Source of the DNA: Pelomyxa schiedti
Lineage: Eukaryota > Protista > Evosea
NCBI GenBank assembly: GCA_020536535.1
Contig: JAHLWZ010000638.1
Location: 1 to 42,953 of the forward strand
Length of the DNA stretch: 42,953 bases
Reading direction: 5' to 3'
The stretch's first letter is position 1. Every line of letters starts with the position of its first letter. The notes beneath the pieces were generated by a model, which was not told where the DNA came from, ran no database searches, and was given only the letters and a program-made list of their open reading frames with translations. A program made the translations under genes and the position numbers. Below, piece by piece: positions 479 to 34,690 of this stretch.

Positions 479-3400
479 TTAGGGGAGATAGAAGTCCATG
501 TAGAAGGGGCAGTGGTCACTCGCTTCGAGGCCCCTGTGAGAATATTAGTTGATAAGGCAAATGTGACTTGATTTCACGCACTTTGTATCAGTGTATCGTT
601 CCCCGGTATATCTGGCAGCTTGGTGTGTGATTCCCTTGCGCAGCACTTGCGGGACAGTATCTCTATTCTTGGGTGCCATAGACAGATACCTGTTTTTTTT
701 TTTTTTGCTGTTAACTTTTATTGTTGCAAGGGGAAGACGAGTGACCTGGAAGGAAGAATGTAATCGAGCTGCTTGTATTCGCGGCCTTTCTTGTAGTAGT
801 GCGTCCATCGTTCGTCCTCATCTGGTATCCTCTCAAGAACATTCTCCAGATTTGGGTTGTAAACCAGGGGCGTGACTCCACTCTCTTGATCATCTGGCCC
901 GGCACAGTAATCATTGAAGTCACCAAGAACAATCACGTTTCCTCTTATCTCTGGGCCATATCTTGTTTGGGATTAAGGTGAGTAAGCCATGTAATAGTAA
1001 TGATGATTAAAGATACTCCTGACCTCTCATTAAGGATTTCAACTACTTTGTTGACCTGCAAGATCCTGGTGCCCCTGGTTTCGTCACGCCCGCCCATCAT
1101 GGACTTGAAGTGATTGACAAGAACATGAAGCTGCTTGGAACCCACCTTGACCTCGACTTCTAGACAGTCCCTACTGAACAGTGGGGTATCGGACTTTGGC
1201 TTGAGCTCGTCCCTGTGTGTCCGGATCACTCCCAGGGGGTACTTTGACAGCAGGCCCACGTTGATGTAGCGCTGGTCATTGCCTTGGATGAGAAGGCGAT
1301 GGGGGTACATCGAACCGAGGTAGCTCTTGTTGAACATGTCAAGGAGCACAAGATCTTCAACCTCCTCAAGGGCTAGAATATCAGCGTTGACCTCGCGGAT
1401 GCAGTTGGCAGTGAGTCTCTTCTCGGGTTCGTCAAAGATTGACAGAGCCGTATCCGAGATTGTCCACCCGCCCTCGAGCTTCTTCCTGATTTCGGCCTCG
1501 TCCTTCTTCTTGAAGTTGAACCTCTTGAACAAGTTCTCGCAGTTGAACGTGCAGACTCTCACACAAACATCGCCTTCATCTCCCTCCTGCACTTCCTCAT
1601 CCTCCGCCGGCTCCTCCACTGGTTTTACCACCGGCTTTGCTGGTTTTGCCCTGCCACTTCTTCTGTGTGGTGCACCCAGCGGGACTTCCCTGACCTGCGT
1701 GGCGAACGGCAACAGCGGGAGCGAGCACGCTATGTCGTGGTGGTCTAGGGTTATTACGGGCAGAATAGGAGCCTCCGCCTGCTCATACTCGAATGTGGAC
1801 GCCTTGTACCTGGCTTCCGCGATGTTTGGTGCACAGCTGAAGCCTGGGATGGCCATCTGTACGCATATCAGGCTATTTCCGCAGGCCTCATTGACGGCTT
1901 TGAGGTTGTGAGCTCGGTCGTCGAACACGGCCACCGGGAGGCCGAACCTCACCTTGATCTCAGGTTGCTTATTTGCCTTGTTCTGCTCGTCGCTTACGTG
2001 AGCCAGGTCTGGGTTCCCAAACAGCAACCTGTCAGCTTCTGTGCTCCTGATTTCACGCAGAGCGTATACAGTTGGGGCCAGCTGAACGTCAAGCCACCTT
2101 CCACTGATGTAAACAACAACGCCACCCAGCTTCTCGACCTGATTGATGAAGTTGAGAAGACCAGTGGTGGGAATGTCGTTAGCCATGAGGTTAAGTGCTC
2201 CCCAGAAAGCAATGTGGAATGATGACCATACTGTAGCATTTGGATCGGTTCGGGGTAACCATTTATATTCCGTAGCACTTGGCGGTGTCCATTTGAGGTG
2301 TGGGTATTTGGAAACAATCTAAATCGATTTTTGTTAGAATGGGGAACACTGGGAACTACTATTTATATATATAGCGTGTATTGGACAAAGACGGGAAGAA
2401 GCAGAGGGAAAGATATAAACTCACAAAAGGAATTTGAGCAACAAATCCTTGCCAAGCTTCATATGCATATCCCGGGAGGATACCACCAGTATACCTCTGT
2501 GGGTCAGTCTTGAACTCCTCAATATCCCAGTCTCTTCCAGCTTGCCTCAATGCATTTACAGTGCGTTCATAAGGAATCAGTGACGTGAGATCCAAGTCAA
2601 GTTCCACAACTGGTACCACTCCAGTCTTTACGACTTCCTTGATCCTGTCAAATACCGCCTTGAAGGCATCACTCTGCTCCTTGGCAGTGACACTGGGATT
2701 GAGGGTGAGAGTTGTGCGATCCCTTGTATAGAATCCCTTCTCGGTCTTGGGGTTGAAGTTCTTCTTTCCAAAGTATGCCATTGTGATGCCCTTGGTGAAC
2801 AAGCCGACCTCAACAACGCCTGGTATTGACTGGATTTCCTCTTCTAGGAGTCCCGGGTGTATCATCTGCTTCTCGTCAAACAGAGCGTCAATAATGAAGT
2901 TGGCATTGTCAGTTGCATATGGAATTGGGATTCCGGGGTTGTCGCTGCTGGGTTTGCCTACTCTGAGCTGGGGGTCTGTAGATGGTCCGTAGCGCTGCCT
3001 GAGGGCTAAGATGACCCTCTCCACAGCGAGTGGGGTGACTTCAATGGGCACCCTGACACCTGCTAACGTCTCACAGTCTTTTTGCCAGTGTGCCACAATG
3101 ATAAACACAGAAGCCGAAGCGGCAAGAACCTTCTCTTGAAGGAGACAGCCACCGCCACCCTTGACTACATTGAGATAGAGGTCGCACCTATCGGCACCAT
3201 CAATATCCACATCTACTTTGGGTGAGTGCTTCAAGTCACTCACGTTCAACTTGGCGTGGAGAAGCGAGTCTCTTGTCTCCAGCGAGCTTGGCACACATGT
3301 GATGTTTCTCACCTTCCCGGTATCCACAAGCTTCTTCAACTCTTCAATAACGTACTTCACTGTTGTGCCTGACCCCACTCCAATAACCATGCCGTCCCTT

Positions 3401-6400
3401 GTCACCCACTCTTGTACAGCAGCACGTGCTGCTTCCATTTTGGCTCTCTCTTCCTGCTGCTCGGTGGTACTGTGGCTTGTTGTAAAAGCCATGGGCTGTG
3501 CTAATTGCGGGGTACCAACAGCAGCGGTAGGCTGTTGTAGTACAACATCACGGTATCTCTGGACTATACCCACTACACTGTCAACATCTGACACGCAGTA
3601 TATCCTCTTGCTGTACCCTTTACTCTTTCCAATCAAGTCTTCCCTTTCACTTACGGTAAGAAGAGACTGGAACACAGTGTTCTCAATCCAGAAGTTTTTG
3701 AAGAAGATCATTGGCTTGGAGACATCACCATCCTTCTCTGAGGCGTAGCAGTTGGGGACTGCAAACTGGGCGATTTCAGTGCGAGTTCCTGCACTCCCCT
3801 CCGTGAACAGGATTCCACAGTTGCACATGGTGACAAGTATGTCTTCCCTGACAGCGTTGCTCACGAACTTTGCTTGCTTGGAGGCAAATCTGTTATACGG
3901 TTCGTGTCCATACAACCAGGTTGGAACTCCCAGTGACATCTTCCCTGTGTTTGTTATGAACTTCTCCCTCATTCTGTCAGCGGCTTCCACGTCAGAATCG
4001 GGAGCAGATGTCAGGATATCCAGCTCCTTCTCAAACTCTGGCTCCGGAATATCACACATCCAAGCACCAAAGTTGGCGCTTTCCATGGCGCCAGGCCCAC
4101 CGCCAGTGACAATGGTGAACCCGCTCTTGGCAAGCTTGTATGAGACACGAGCCACCTCCTTGAATACCTCTGAGCCGCGGGCCATGCTGTGGCCGCCCAT
4201 CACGCCCACAATATACCTCCCCTTGTTCTCCTCTTTCAAAGCATCGAGAATTAGCCCATCGTGGATATACTGAGCCAGAAGCTCCAGCTGAGTTTTGTCC
4301 TTCTTCTGCACGAACTGATAGATTTTGTCGTCTACCACGCGGAGCTCGTCAACGGTGTACAGGCCAGTTCTAATTGGATCGAATTCATCAGTGGCGAGCT
4401 TTGGTTTGATAATGATCGCTCCCTGTGCTATTAGCTGTTCCTCAGTGACACCTGGTGGGAACTTCACATCGCCAATAATGTATGCCTCAGAGGGGTCAAA
4501 CACACCCAGGAAATCAGGCACTTTGCTGAAGTCTGTACCGTCGTTGATGACACACCTCCTCAATTTTATTCTGCAGCTCACTGCAGTTGTTACGGGTGCA
4601 CCAGCACTCTCGGTCTTGCTTACTGTAGCGGTAAAACTGGCTGCTGCTAGCTTGGCGGTTTTGGCTGCCGCCTTCTGTATTCGGTGTTCTTCGTATCTCT
4701 TCAACGTATCCAGGGAATCGATTACCTTCAGTGCTTTTGCCTTCAGCTCTGAGTGGAACCTGGGTGGTGCAAATGGAGGGGGAAGAACAGCAGGAGTAGA
4801 TCGAACAGTAAGTGCAGCGGTGGACTTCTCCTCAACGGCGGCTCTCACATTCTCAGTGGCTCTTCTGATCAGCCTGTGTGTGTTCAAGAAGAACCTTATT
4901 TCGTTTGTCTTTGGTTCCCTGTCAACAAGCATGGCCTGCAGCTTCTCCCTCCAGCCGATTGGTAAGAGAGCCTCAATAGCTGGGTGCTCCGTAGCCAGAA
5001 GCTCGCGGGCATGTGACACATACTTGTCATATACGTTCACATCATCTGCCGGAGGCAGCGGTGCATTGAGAGGTGTCAGGGGAGCGCCATGCTGAATGAG
5101 CTCTCCTACACTGGTCTCGTTTTTGCTAAGCATGGCCTTAAAGAGAGCCTCACTGAGCTGGTACTCGGCGCTGGTGTTGGTCCCCTCATAAACCTTGTAG
5201 TCCAGATAGGCCAGGAGCCTGGCAGCACGGCCCATAAGCATCTCTTGCGCCCTATTTCGGTGCTCGAGAATCTCCTTGATTTTGCTGGGGCAGAGGGCAC
5301 CAAGGGATTTGTCAGGCGCCATGTAGTGCAGGTCCACACCAATTCCAACACCGTCCATTCCGGCCTCGACTGGAATATGAATGGTCTCTTTGGTCATACC
5401 AGCAGAGACGTAAGTTATGAGGCCGGCTCTGTGTGCCTCATGGGCCAGAGTTAGCATCTTACCAAAGTCCAGAGTTTTTGACACCGGGATTGAGGGAACC
5501 TCGGACCTTGCGCCATCCCACGTGACCTTGTCAAAGCCACCCTCAGCAGCTATTTTAATTCCTAGCCGTGCGATATCCATGGGTTCCTGGAGTTTTCTGC
5601 CTTGCGATTCACTGTAAATGGGCTGGAACAGGTTGAACGCCGCAGATAGAACCTGTGTAGACTCGTTTCGAGCCACGTTAGCCCGCAGCGCCTTGAGGAA
5701 TCTGATCGCCTGGTTCTCAGTCATATTCTCCACTGCGATTTTGCATTCTGCCACGCCATCCATAAACATTGCGGTGCATGCTGCTCCTGTTTCGTGAACA
5801 GCCTATTTCCAAGAAGTCAGACAAAAGTTCAAGCAGAAAAGAAAGGGAAAAAAAACCTTGAGGAGTTCTGCTTCAAAGAAGTAATTCTGATCTCCAGAGT
5901 GGGAATGGTCCTTAGAGATGGTCGAATACTGTTCCGCAAGCTCGCTAAAACCCTGCCTGTAGCCCAAGCACTCAAAAGGAGGCCTGCCAATGAAGACCGA
6001 GCATGGAGCCTCATCGGCAACATGCATCCTTACTTTGGCTACATCTACGTGGCTGGGAACCCTGTAGGCCTCCACCAAGTTGCGGTCCTGCGATTCTGAT
6101 CTGTCAATCCACTCTGTGTGGACTGTCACTCCTCCGCGAAGAATTTCTTGGTCCTGTTAATTCAGTTCGGTGTTACTTGAGTGATACAGAATATATTAAG
6201 TGAACACTGACCTGGCAAGTTATTTTGAGGTGGTCAGGACCGGGGTCAGTGAGAGCAACATAGGTCTGTGCGCGGGGCCTCCTTCCTGGCAGTCCAAGGG
6301 GCCTGAAACAACGAGGAAGAGCCACGCCAGAGCCAATCAGAGTGTACGCGTAGTGCAGCGCATATAGCTCCGTTGTTGTGGGAGCCCGGGATTGGCTCCG

Positions 6401-7174
6401 GAGCTTGGCAATGGTCTCCTGCATACAAGCCAGGTATCCAGTCTCGCTGAGGCTAGCCACTGTGCGCTGGCCAATTTTGGATGTGGCACTGGGTGGCTCC
6501 GTGGCCCGCACTTGAACTCCCTCAATGCCGCTCTTTACTGTGAAGGCTCCTCCATCATGCACTGGTGGGGTTCCAGAAGGGGGAACCGCCGCGGGCGGGG
6601 CTGCGAAAAGAGAGGTAGACGCGGAGGCAGATGGGAAGATGTCCCTCTTTGTTTTTACGAGCTTCTCGAACAGTTCCCAGAGCTCGTCGGACAGAGTATT
6701 TCCTCCTGATTTTTGGGCGACATCTCCTTGGCCAACTTTTTTGATGGCAGACTCCAGCAGGAAGAGCACTTTGGCCTCGTATTCCTTAAGCCTTAGGTCT
6801 GCAGGGAAGCGAGCAATGAGGTTGTCTTGGATGTACCTCTGGATGTTTCTGAGCATTTCCTCAGGGGTCTGTGGCGTCAAAACTGAGAAAACCGAGAGGA
6901 AACAAGGAAATTCCCATACCTCCCACAGACGAAGTGTGGCCCTGTCGGCACCAACAAACCCGCCTTGTGTGGAGCCCATTTCTTGTTCCAAAGTGGAGCG
7001 CAGGGACGTTGTCATGTCAAACGCCTGGCTGAACATGACAGAGAGAAACTGGCTTGGTGTGCTGGTGAACCAGAATGAGGAGCTCTGAGGTAGCATTAGC
7101 ACAAGTCAAAGGCCATTATGGAGGAGTTCAACCTGTTCGAGCAAACTTTGGCTTGATGCTTGAAGGGTGGTCAT
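479..7174 (-). CDS. Giant multi-enzyme fusion (~2070 aa): N-terminal unknown domain + MfnB-like TIM barrel + LOG phosphoribohydrolase + RpiA + HAD phosphatase + EEP. Exons: 7174-7133, 7084-6920, 6868-6212, 6153-5857, 5802-2425, 2318-1024, 961-746, 689-582, 533-479
   Basis: Eight GT..AG introns of 48, 51, 58, 54, 106, 62, 56 and 48 nt join ORFs 6173-7102, 5803-6129, 2359-5769, 945-2186, 718-936 and 545-808 in compatible phases. Exon sum is 6213 nt = 2071 codons, ending ...GLEASDHCPFYMDFYLP-TAA. Splicing restores split EEP motifs. Exon 1 and the in-frame 51-nt intron are the least certain parts. Confidence 0.88.
482..1565 (-). other. Domain: endonuclease/exonuclease/phosphatase (EEP, DNase I-like fold)
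   Basis: Motifs TFNCENLF, ADILALEEVE, GNDQRYINVGLLS, FSRDCLE, VNHFKS, VIVLGDFND, QLDYIL and ASDH give a complete catalytic set over four exons. Confidence 0.93.
1800..2625 (-). other. Domain: HAD-superfamily phosphatase, split by intron 2319-2424
   Basis: Motif I VVELDLDLT lies in exon 5. Motif II VVYISGR, a candidate motif III Lys (KANK) and motif IV VAVFDD..HN lie in exon 6. Confidence 0.75.
2760..3455 (-). other. rpiA: Domain: ribose-5-phosphate isomerase A
   Basis: Motifs AK..AA..A, IGVGSGTT, DVDIDGAD, VKGGGGCLLQEK, VPIEV, TDNANFIID and IPGVVEVGLF are all present and in order. Confidence 0.95.
3550..4560 (-). other. Domain: LOG/SLOG-family nucleotide monophosphate phosphoribohydrolase, bacterial long-form subtype
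   Basis: Motifs FDPIRTGLYTVDEL, IVGVMGGHS, IVTGGGPGAMESAN, SLGVPTWLYGHEP, NAVRED and GSAGTRTE (variant of PGGxGTxxE). Confidence 0.88.
5200..6440 (-). other. Domain: TIM-barrel enzyme, distantly MfnB (4-HFC-P synthase)/class I aldolase-like
   Basis: Motif succession DGVAECKIAV..QAIRFL / QVLSAAFN / IAAEGGFDKVTWDGA / LAHEAHRAGLITYVSAG / GMDGVGIG follows the C-terminal barrel strands of the MfnB family as I recall them. Recognised by eye; boundaries are approximate. Confidence 0.5.
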
Positions 7175-9634: not shown

Positions 9635-9744
<110 letters not shown>

Positions 9745-34030: not shown

Positions 34031-34690
34031 CTCGCCTGCACTTGTTAGCACTCAACAGAAACAAACAATTTGCACCCACTAGCATGCCCCAGCCAGCACC
34101 AGCACTCACAAGCACCTTCCAGAAAACTACCAGATCTCACCCGTTTTCTGGAAACTACCAGCGCTTCCCAGCATCTTCCAGAAGCTCCCTTCCCTCTCCC
34201 TACTATTCCGGCAACCACAGCAGCTCACCAACACCCTCCGGTAACCCCTACAACTCAACAACACATTCCAGCAACCACCGGCTCAAATCGACACATTCCA
34301 GCAACTACTGACACTCGCCAGCACATACTGGGAACCACTGGCACTCACCAGAACATTCCAGCAACTTTCAGCACTGACCAGCATGTTGTCGTAACTACAG
34401 ACCCACATCTACACATTCCAGCAACTGCCGACATTCACCGGCCCACATACACACATTCCAGCAACCACCGGCTCAAATATACACATTCCAGCAACCACCG
34501 GCAATCACCAGCGTATTCTGGGCAATCGCTGACACTCACCAGCACATTCCCGCAATCGCCGGCTCGCATACCCACACCACATTCCAACAACCCACTGGCA
34601 CTCACCAGCACCTTCCGGCAATCACCGGTTCACATAAACACATTCCAGCGACCACCGGCAACCACAGGCATAGCACCTTCCAGCAATCAC
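34030..34690. repeat. Degenerate ~30-bp minisatellite, array B
   Basis: acacattcca occurs at 34261 and 34291, and the array translates as 10-aa repeats HIPATTxxxx. Confidence 0.9.

Follow-up and report, generated by a model that had tools for sequence, protein, structure and literature searches.

A five-domain protein of Pelomyxa schiedti suggests a route from nucleic acid ribose to an MfnB-like barrel

Background

What use could a cell have for a TIM barrel, a LOG-family phosphoribohydrolase, a ribose-5-phosphate isomerase (RpiA), a HAD phosphatase and an EEP phosphodiesterase joined in one polypeptide? The question is raised by a minus-strand gene at positions 479 to 7,174 of a contig of Pelomyxa schiedti (JAHLWZ010000638.1, assembly GCA_020536535.1), whose whole 42,953 nucleotides are called the window below. 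The original prediction, made from the DNA letters, had joined apparently separate reading frames into this gene and had chained its activities into a pathway from nucleic acid to pentose phosphate. Our comparisons with homologues, operons and structural models support a single gene. They also suggest that a chain from nuclease to nucleoside 5'-monophosphate (NMP), ribose-5-phosphate (R5P) and ribulose-5-phosphate (Ru5P) probably leads into the barrel.

Gene structure and domains

The gene was rebuilt by hand from its splice sites. Its nine exons sum to 6,213 nucleotides, which is 2,070 amino acids plus the stop codon, and from the N to the C terminus the domains are an MfnB-like TIM barrel, LOG, RpiA, HAD and EEP. 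The features are as follows.

7174-7133, 7084-6920, 6868-6212, 6153-5857, 5802-2425, 2318-1024, 961-746, 689-582, 533-479, minus strand: exons 1 to 9
7133..7174, minus strand: exon 1, proposed ATG at 7174, other in-frame ATG at 7096
6869..6919, minus strand: intron 2, 51 nt, in-frame, splicing seen in RNA contigs
6154..6211, minus strand: intron 3, 58 nt, splicing seen in RNA contigs
5803..5856, minus strand: intron 4, 54 nt, phase 0, within the barrel, outside spliced-RNA coverage
2319..2424, minus strand: intron 5, 106 nt, phase 0, within the HAD domain, outside spliced-RNA coverage
6326..7051, minus strand: N-terminal helical region of the barrel family, residues 26-250, with an Ala/Pro/Ser/Thr-rich insert
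5239..6274, minus strand: MfnB/MJ1099-like TIM barrel, residues about 268-575, spanning introns 3 and 4; invariant residues H300, E302, R306, E316, R345, K408 and D483
4564..4986, minus strand: Ala/Pro/Thr-rich linker, residues 660-800
3559..4566, minus strand: LOG-family phosphoribohydrolase domain, residues 800-1135, with GGGPGAME, R1039 and E1063
2755..3450, minus strand: RpiA domain, residues 1172-1403, with GxGSGTT, DGAD, KGGG and LLQEK intact
1788..2691, minus strand: HAD phosphatase domain, residues 1425-1690, with D1456-x-D1458, S1585, K1627 and D1646-D1647, spanning intron 5
1572..1787, minus strand: Pro- then Glu-rich linker, residues 1691-1762
479..1571, minus strand: EEP phosphodiesterase/nuclease-fold domain, residues 1763-2070, stop at 481-479, spanning introns 962-1023, 690-745 and 534-581; catalytic residues N1772, E1832, H1916, D1959-x-N1961 and D2059-H2060

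Is this really one gene? All eight introns are GT-AG and 48-106 nt long, the joined frame has no internal stop, and seven of the eight introns would introduce an early stop if retained. Intron 1 and the start codon at 7174 are proposed, unproven features of the model. Single-cell RNA contigs of run X2 prove the splicing of two of the eight introns (6869-6919 and 6154-6211). Introns 5803-5856 and 2319-2424 are spanned by no spliced contig, the single-cell coverage being fragmentary throughout, and this weighs neither way; the RNA check of the eight junctions thus came out in part. Unspliced contigs touching these two introns look like DNA or pre-mRNA, and one of them also keeps a proven intron. 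Note that the RNA comes from one sample of one study, and that the genome itself probably derives from run X4. Both of these decisive introns lie inside a domain. Intron 5803-5856 splits the barrel, with H300 and E302 upstream and K408 downstream, and intron 2319-2424 splits the HAD domain, with motif I upstream and motifs II-IV downstream, as had been predicted. Junctions 3-8 of the model are colinear with transcript-derived homologues, and transcripts of Mastigella, Cavostelium, Rhynchopus and one metatranscriptome each read across both decisive introns in a single ORF. The single frame of about 2,070 residues therefore holds. GenBank has the P. schiedti gene as one protein of 1,903 residues (KAH3759992.1), named just 'ribose 5-phosphate isomerase'. 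That record joins exons across both decisive introns, begins at 7015, reads into intron 962-1023 and loses the C terminus of EEP. The fusion has no signal peptide, and we infer a single cytosolic polypeptide.

For the database searches the gene was taken exon by exon or replaced by natural homologues, and the joined frame was used locally for phase check and alignment. RpiA passes both of its cut-offs (PF06026, 2e-43 and 148.5 bits against 26; TIGR00021, 184.7 against 126.4), and its DGAD, KGGG and EK motifs are present in an alignment to yeast 1XTZ. The LOG profile matches are weak and below every curated cut-off (SLOG cluster4, 1e-5; PpnN, 7e-5). The spacing of R1039 and E1063 is 24, against 23 in Cg1261, and both residues are kept in all fusion homologues that cover the site; the PGGxGTxxE site has the variant form (E/P)G(S/A)(A/G)GTRTE. 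Judged by these sub-cut-off family matches and motifs, the domain is a divergent type-II-like member of the family. The HAD domain matches HAD IIIB at 5e-5 and PF03767 at 23.4 bits against a cut-off of 27, and a PDB sequence search returned no match for it; its motifs I-IV (DxD, S/T, K, DD) are present and are kept in fusion homologues. For EEP, exon 6 alone reaches 40 bits against 27 with PF19580, and the superfamily match is 3e-10. Its catalytic set (N, E, H, DxN, D, SDH) is present and conserved in homologues. A weak ExeM/NucH match, together with the interchange with S1/P1 and EndA described below, suggests that EEP is a nuclease. The predicted catalytic motifs of LOG, RpiA, HAD and EEP are thus all in place, the PGGxGTxxE site of LOG in variant form.

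Operons, other fusions and neighbouring genes

Is nucleic acid the input of such an enzyme set? Genome and metagenome scans turned up 130 prokaryotic or metagenomic barrel loci, which form 53 groups at less than 70% identity. They span Bacillota, Proteobacteria, cyanobacteria, Acidobacteria, Planctomycetes, Verrucomicrobia, myxobacteria, actinomycetes and one thaumarchaeote, a scattered distribution, with integrases nearby. In 28 of the 53 groups the fetched flanks hold at least one of LOG, RpiA, HAD, EEP and a further family, here called Y. By group, the partners are Y (22), HAD (19), LOG (18), RpiA (14) and EEP (at least 6, an undercount). For example, one operon reads EEP, barrel, LOG, RpiA:HAD (L015), another HAD, barrel, Y, RpiA, LOG, EEP (L029), and others EEP, PhnD:barrel, LOG, RpiA, EEP (L038) or barrel, Y, RpiA, LOG:S1/P1 (L082), while L169 has EndA and LOG with RpiA:barrel. 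Fusions occur as S1/P1-GST-RpiA-LOG-barrel (P0277, whose S1/P1 nuclease start resembles a signal peptide), as LOG-barrel-EndA (P0264) and as LOG-RpiA-barrel in Myxococcaceae. LOG-EEP and LOG-RNB fusions also exist, and no barrel was seen with either. Two different LOG subfamilies alternate in the same slot, and four nuclease types (EEP, S1/P1, EndA and RNase II-type) are interchangeable beside LOG and RpiA. This swapping of unrelated nuclease folds is what most strongly indicates nucleic acid as the input of the pathway. As a side observation, a LOG-RNB (RNase II) protein (P0062, L152:8001-10865) lies upstream of a LodA-type oxidase cluster, with no barrel in its 8 kb flanks.

Redox genes are the other recurrent neighbours. 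In ten groups a quinone-reductase-type Zn-ADH gene stands no more than 1.6 kb from the barrel gene, and such genes never lie beyond 3.5 kb. A multicopper oxidase adjoins the barrel gene in four groups and in one fungal cluster, DJ-1 is near it in two groups and SDR in two, and in myxobacteria G6PDH and haem peroxidase are near it. In the fungal cluster (L154:5083-12404) the stand-alone barrel is divergent from the multicopper oxidase, and genes for a Zn-ADH and a fungal transcription factor lie close by; the same barrel-multicopper oxidase pairing is found in myxobacteria and actinomycetes.

Family Y, of about 290 residues, has neither a Pfam nor a PDB sequence match. Its model (pLDDT 90) carries invariant H, HD, HR and HH, and its six best structural matches are HD-type cyclic-dinucleotide phosphodiesterases (HD-GYP/PgpH) at Z 3.4-4.9, weak matches that are leads only, as is any structural match with Z under 8. 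Y stands alone or is fused to LOG or HAD, and it is absent from every protist fusion. In L093, L094, L125 and L137, barrel and HAD:Y genes at the operon head are followed by CHAT-like and MoxR-type AAA genes.

L020:8835-9740, L023:3240-4313, L031:9367-10338 and 20 more: family Y loci

The barrel family

Then what is the barrel? Its N-terminal 600 residues fall in a family without a Pfam model, whose members are almost all named 'hypothetical'. A single-sequence search of PDB found nothing for the barrel, nor did Pfam or NCBIfam, and PF04476, the MfnB family, does not match. The structure that was modelled is that of the Desulfobacter homologue (P0007:1-660, pLDDT 89). Its closest fold is MJ1099/MfnB, with a Foldseek E of 8e-8 and a VIA Z of 24.1 at rmsd 2.3 across 230 residues; the next family follows at Z 17.9. 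This supports the earlier assignment of the first domain as a TIM barrel. The profile match to 4RC1 is just E 0.0019. K408 aligns with MfnB Lys85, the lysine of MJ1099 IKVGL, and D483 with Asp151; the equivalents of both are invariant in 97 barrel sequences. Strand 2 reads H-x-E in all 97, where MfnB has Asp25 and Lys27, in a register taken from secondary structure. Wang et al. reportedly assigned in 2015 the roles of MfnB Lys85 and Asp151, and of Asp25 and the Schiff-base Lys27 on strand 2. As modelled, the barrel is built on a scaffold like that of MfnB without itself being an MfnB.

Some further forms of the family were noted. One of its ESM Atlas clusters is 74% eukaryotic, with Mollusca commonest (candidate animal genes). 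Several barrels are fused behind a PhnD-type phosphate/phosphonate-binding domain without an evident signal peptide (P0012, P0020, P0023; L013, L017, L021, L022, L038), possibly a phosphate sensor on an enzyme. In a giant protein of 5,969 residues (P0031) the barrel is present one and a half times, together with two Y domains and a weak match to JAB.

Other eukaryotes and evolutionary history

When the whole library was searched with exon 5, long relatives came up. Trinity ORFs of Mastigella eilhardi (1,976/2,030 residues), Cavostelium apophysatum (2,001) and Rhynchopus euleeides (2,138) share all five domains and their order; there is also a JGI version with one 2,121-residue ORF on 7.2-8.3-kb contigs, and an intron-split copy on an AT-rich metagenome contig (L003). 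The architecture occurs in at least six lineages or samples of eukaryotes, and every named carrier among them is a phagotroph. A shorter barrel-LOG-RpiA-HAD form without EEP is encoded by an intron-containing gene of Kipferlia bialata and by an intronless gene among bacterial genes (L001), an ADH adjoining both; the contig of a Desulfobacter metagenome-assembled genome breaks off inside a barrel-LOG-RpiA-HAD gene.

L001:5532-10553, L002:10001-13105, L143:8285-12727: loci of the barrel-LOG-RpiA-HAD fusion, whose intronless form is 60% identical to the intron-containing Kipferlia gene

Pelomyxa itself has an older paralogue on contig C791 (L010/L011), without the barrel and with altered HAD motifs; in paralogue P0003 the HAD motifs are partly degraded. 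A further copy on C1055 (L012:2231-5541) is 96% identical in DNA, has deletions and frameshifts, and ends inside RpiA. That it is an allele was rejected, as its flanks do not match, and it is a broken duplicate. A Mastigamoeba protein has LOG and a degenerate RpiA without the barrel.

Where did the fusion come from? A quick tree of the barrel places every LOG-fused protein in a single clade (SH 99) within the prokaryotic family; a second clade (SH 100) takes in most of the stand-alone barrels from myxobacteria, actinomycetes, bacilli and fungi. The HAD tree recovers the same fusion clade (99). The RpiA of the fusion groups with eukaryote/Asgard RpiA and not with operon RpiA (SH 97), which suggests that it was recruited separately from the operon copies, but an AU test does not reject their monophyly (p 0.35); P0277 RpiA is placed separately. 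The fusion LOG groups with other protist LOGs. The idea of a simply fused bacterial operon is therefore only partly right, in that barrel and HAD come from operon families while RpiA and LOG group as just described. Wherever a domain tree contains L001 and the Desulfobacter copy, they nest together with the proteins of Kipferlia, Rhynchopus and JGI, at 60-64% identity. These two copies are candidates for eukaryote-to-bacterium transfer, or for a bacterial donor of the fusion.

Elsewhere in the window, Pfam gave no match for ten other ORFs. A perfect (AC)54 microsatellite (9635-9742) and a degenerate 30-nt coding-like tandem repeat (34253-34502) are ordinary.

Discussion

How would the five enzymes work together? 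EEP would cut RNA, DNA or other phosphodiesters to mononucleotides, as its family and the interchange with S1/P1, EndA and RNase II-type nucleases suggest. LOG, with its catalytic Arg and Glu present, would hydrolyse 5'-NMP to base and R5P, the known chemistry of LOG enzymes (PMC5379747, PMC8599513), and RpiA, with intact motifs, would convert R5P to Ru5P. Up to the entry of Ru5P into the barrel, the predicted pathway is backed by operons and independent fusions; the role of HAD and the last step are less firm. The weakest step is that of the barrel, which might take Ru5P by its strand-4 lysine, strand-6 aspartate and His/Glu site. It could shift the carbonyl, with the phosphate either lost or kept, and so yield a reactive, redox-active C5 compound of deoxypentosone or furanone type. 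The repertoire of MfnB includes phosphate elimination, TIM-like isomerisation, aldol reaction and cyclisation to a furan (PMC11365854). HAD would strip phosphate either off the product or off 3'-phosphorylated nucleotides, which LOG could then use. A plain 5'-nucleotidase would starve LOG, and therefore a 3'-phosphatase or a product phosphatase is more likely.

Does this chain serve housekeeping? The Pelomyxa genome has separate RpiB and Rpe. Because of these and of the redox neighbours, a dedicated reactive C5 product is favoured over plain carbon salvage. That the fusion is a dedicated nucleic-acid-ribose pathway, shared with scattered bacteria, which ends in a specialised metabolite and lies outside housekeeping pentose-phosphate metabolism, is in our judgement evenly poised. 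Ru5P decays spontaneously to 4,5-dihydroxy-2,3-pentanedione (DPD) and 4-hydroxy-5-methyl-3(2H)-furanone (MHF) (PMC2443158). If the barrel turned Ru5P into a DPD- or furanone-type signal or reactive metabolite, it would be an enzymatic, LuxS-independent source of AI-2-like compounds, a tentative idea that we think rather unlikely. If true, protists that feed on bacteria or harbour them would carry the pathway in one polypeptide, and it would have been passed back to bacteria.

Several observations weigh against a dedicated pathway of this kind. Introns 5803-5856 and 2319-2424 have no direct RNA proof. With H-x-E in place of Asp25 and Lys27, the aldol chemistry of MfnB is probably not simply conserved. 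Ten operon groups carry just barrel, HAD and Y, without LOG or RpiA, and the set is modular, C791 and Mastigamoeba lacking the barrel and Kipferlia and L001 lacking EEP. The redox neighbours are mostly at stand-alone barrels, many of them in the separate clade, and may reflect another substrate. G6PDH linkage was considered as a general trend and dropped, one myxobacterial group remaining after de-replication.

What else could the fusion do? The strongest competitor is catabolic salvage, in which the first three steps are the same and the barrel acts on Ru5P as an aldolase or epimerase that feeds carbon metabolism. For example, it might yield dihydroxyacetone and glycolaldehyde phosphate, which HAD and a neighbouring Zn-ADH would finish to ethylene glycol, so that phagotrophs and bacteria live on RNA ribose. 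Transaldolase and FSA form their Schiff base on a strand-4 lysine, the position of the barrel's invariant lysine, and the strand-2 H-x-E recalls the metal motif of Rpe. The phagotrophy of every named eukaryotic carrier and the signal-peptide-like start of P0277 also fit, and a haloarchaeal pathway likewise combines an isomerase, a HAD phosphatase, a ketopentose-phosphate aldolase and a glycolaldehyde reductase (PMC9700705). However, the host already has RpiB and Rpe, the distribution is patchy and mobile, the multicopper oxidase and haem peroxidase neighbours are left unexplained, and the closest fold is a synthase and not an aldolase of central metabolism. Salvage is thus possible but on the unlikely side, and the harvest of carbon from prey RNA, offered earlier as an example, is weakened by the host's own enzymes, the lack of a signal peptide and the redox-enzyme neighbours of barrel genes.

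A conflict or stress system is more doubtful still. Here nucleic acid or nucleotide signals would be destroyed, NMP pools drained, and a toxic or signalling dicarbonyl made by the barrel, and protists would have kept the system as an antimicrobial or antiviral effector. The barrel-HAD-Y operons followed by CHAT and MoxR-type AAA genes, the invariant H, HD and HH of Y with its leads to cyclic-dinucleotide phosphodiesterases, and the scatter across many phyla with integrases nearby would suit it. On the other hand, no PADLOC model of known anti-phage systems matches, the barrel was not found in the phage genomes or viral contigs searched, which give no sign of a viral vector, and Y, whose structural matches with Z below 8 are leads only, is missing from all protist fusions.

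It is very improbable that the free base is the wanted LOG product, with the barrel joining base or amine to a ketopentose phosphate and HAD dephosphorylating the nucleoside-like metabolite. The angustmycin cluster does combine LOG AgmA, which supplies adenine, with epimerase AgmD and phosphatase AgmB (PMC8599513), but no PRPP-synthetase-like or phosphoribosyltransferase partner was found in any locus examined, the RpiA partner points to the sugar, and many barrel genes have no LOG. That the domains are adjacent separate genes, or a loose fused array without a common pathway, is hardly credible: two introns not seen spliced in P. schiedti and the partial paralogues would allow it, but both introns are intradomain, single ORFs occur in four independent transcript sets, and fusion and operon linkage arose repeatedly and independently.

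If a dedicated pathway from nucleic acid ribose is the right reading, what does it mean? It offers Ru5P as a substrate hypothesis for an enzyme family that has no name and whose several hundred proteins are spread over bacteria, archaea, fungi and protists. That nuclease, LOG, RpiA and barrel were assembled repeatedly, and partly independently, is a Rosetta-stone argument, and a strong one, for an unknown route leading out of nucleotide metabolism. A DPD- or furanone-like product would bear on LuxS-independent AI-2 activity in eukaryotes, and a C3+C2 product would be new nucleoside catabolism. The two bacterial-context copies nested among protist fusions add a candidate eukaryote-to-bacterium transfer. 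Four of the five domains are known families, while literature searches found no description of the architecture, the barrel family or the pathway. The claim that the architecture was undescribed stands in that respect, but it recurs well beyond Pelomyxa and GenBank already holds it under the name of RpiA.

Comparison with known systems

The barrel resembles MfnB/MJ1099, the 4-HFC-P synthase (PF04476, PDB 4RC1), in its fold, its Lys85 and Asp151 equivalents and its C-terminal phosphate-binding strands. It differs in its 17% identity, the missing PF04476 match, the H-x-E strand and extra N- and C-terminal helical regions, and its loci have nucleases, LOG and RpiA as partners and no methanofuran genes nearby. 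With the LOG/PpnN nucleosidases (type II LOG: 1WEK, 5WQ3) the LOG domain shares the GGGPGxME loop and the catalytic Arg and Glu at LOG spacing. Unlike them, it scores below all curated cut-offs, reads EGSAGTRTE for PGGxGTxxE, has Glu in place of Lys after the Arg, bears an N-terminal extension and is fused to RpiA and the barrel.

At the level of pathways, the haloarchaeal non-carboxylating pentose bisphosphate pathway (PMC9700705) also leads from nucleoside ribose through an isomerase, a HAD and ketopentose-phosphate cleavage to a reductase, but it uses other families throughout (phosphorylase, R15P isomerase, FucA-type aldolase), 1,5-bisphosphate chemistry and separate genes. The angustmycin agm cluster (PMC8599513) likewise has LOG, a phosphatase and a ketose-phosphate epimerase in one pathway; it needs a pyrophosphokinase and an APRT-like transferase, which are absent here, and has neither nuclease nor RpiA. 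DPD/MHF formation from Ru5P (PMC2443158) and yeast Cff1 (PMC8092285) offer a possible substrate and product class, but that formation is spontaneous or cupin-dependent, with no shown link to MfnB-like barrels.

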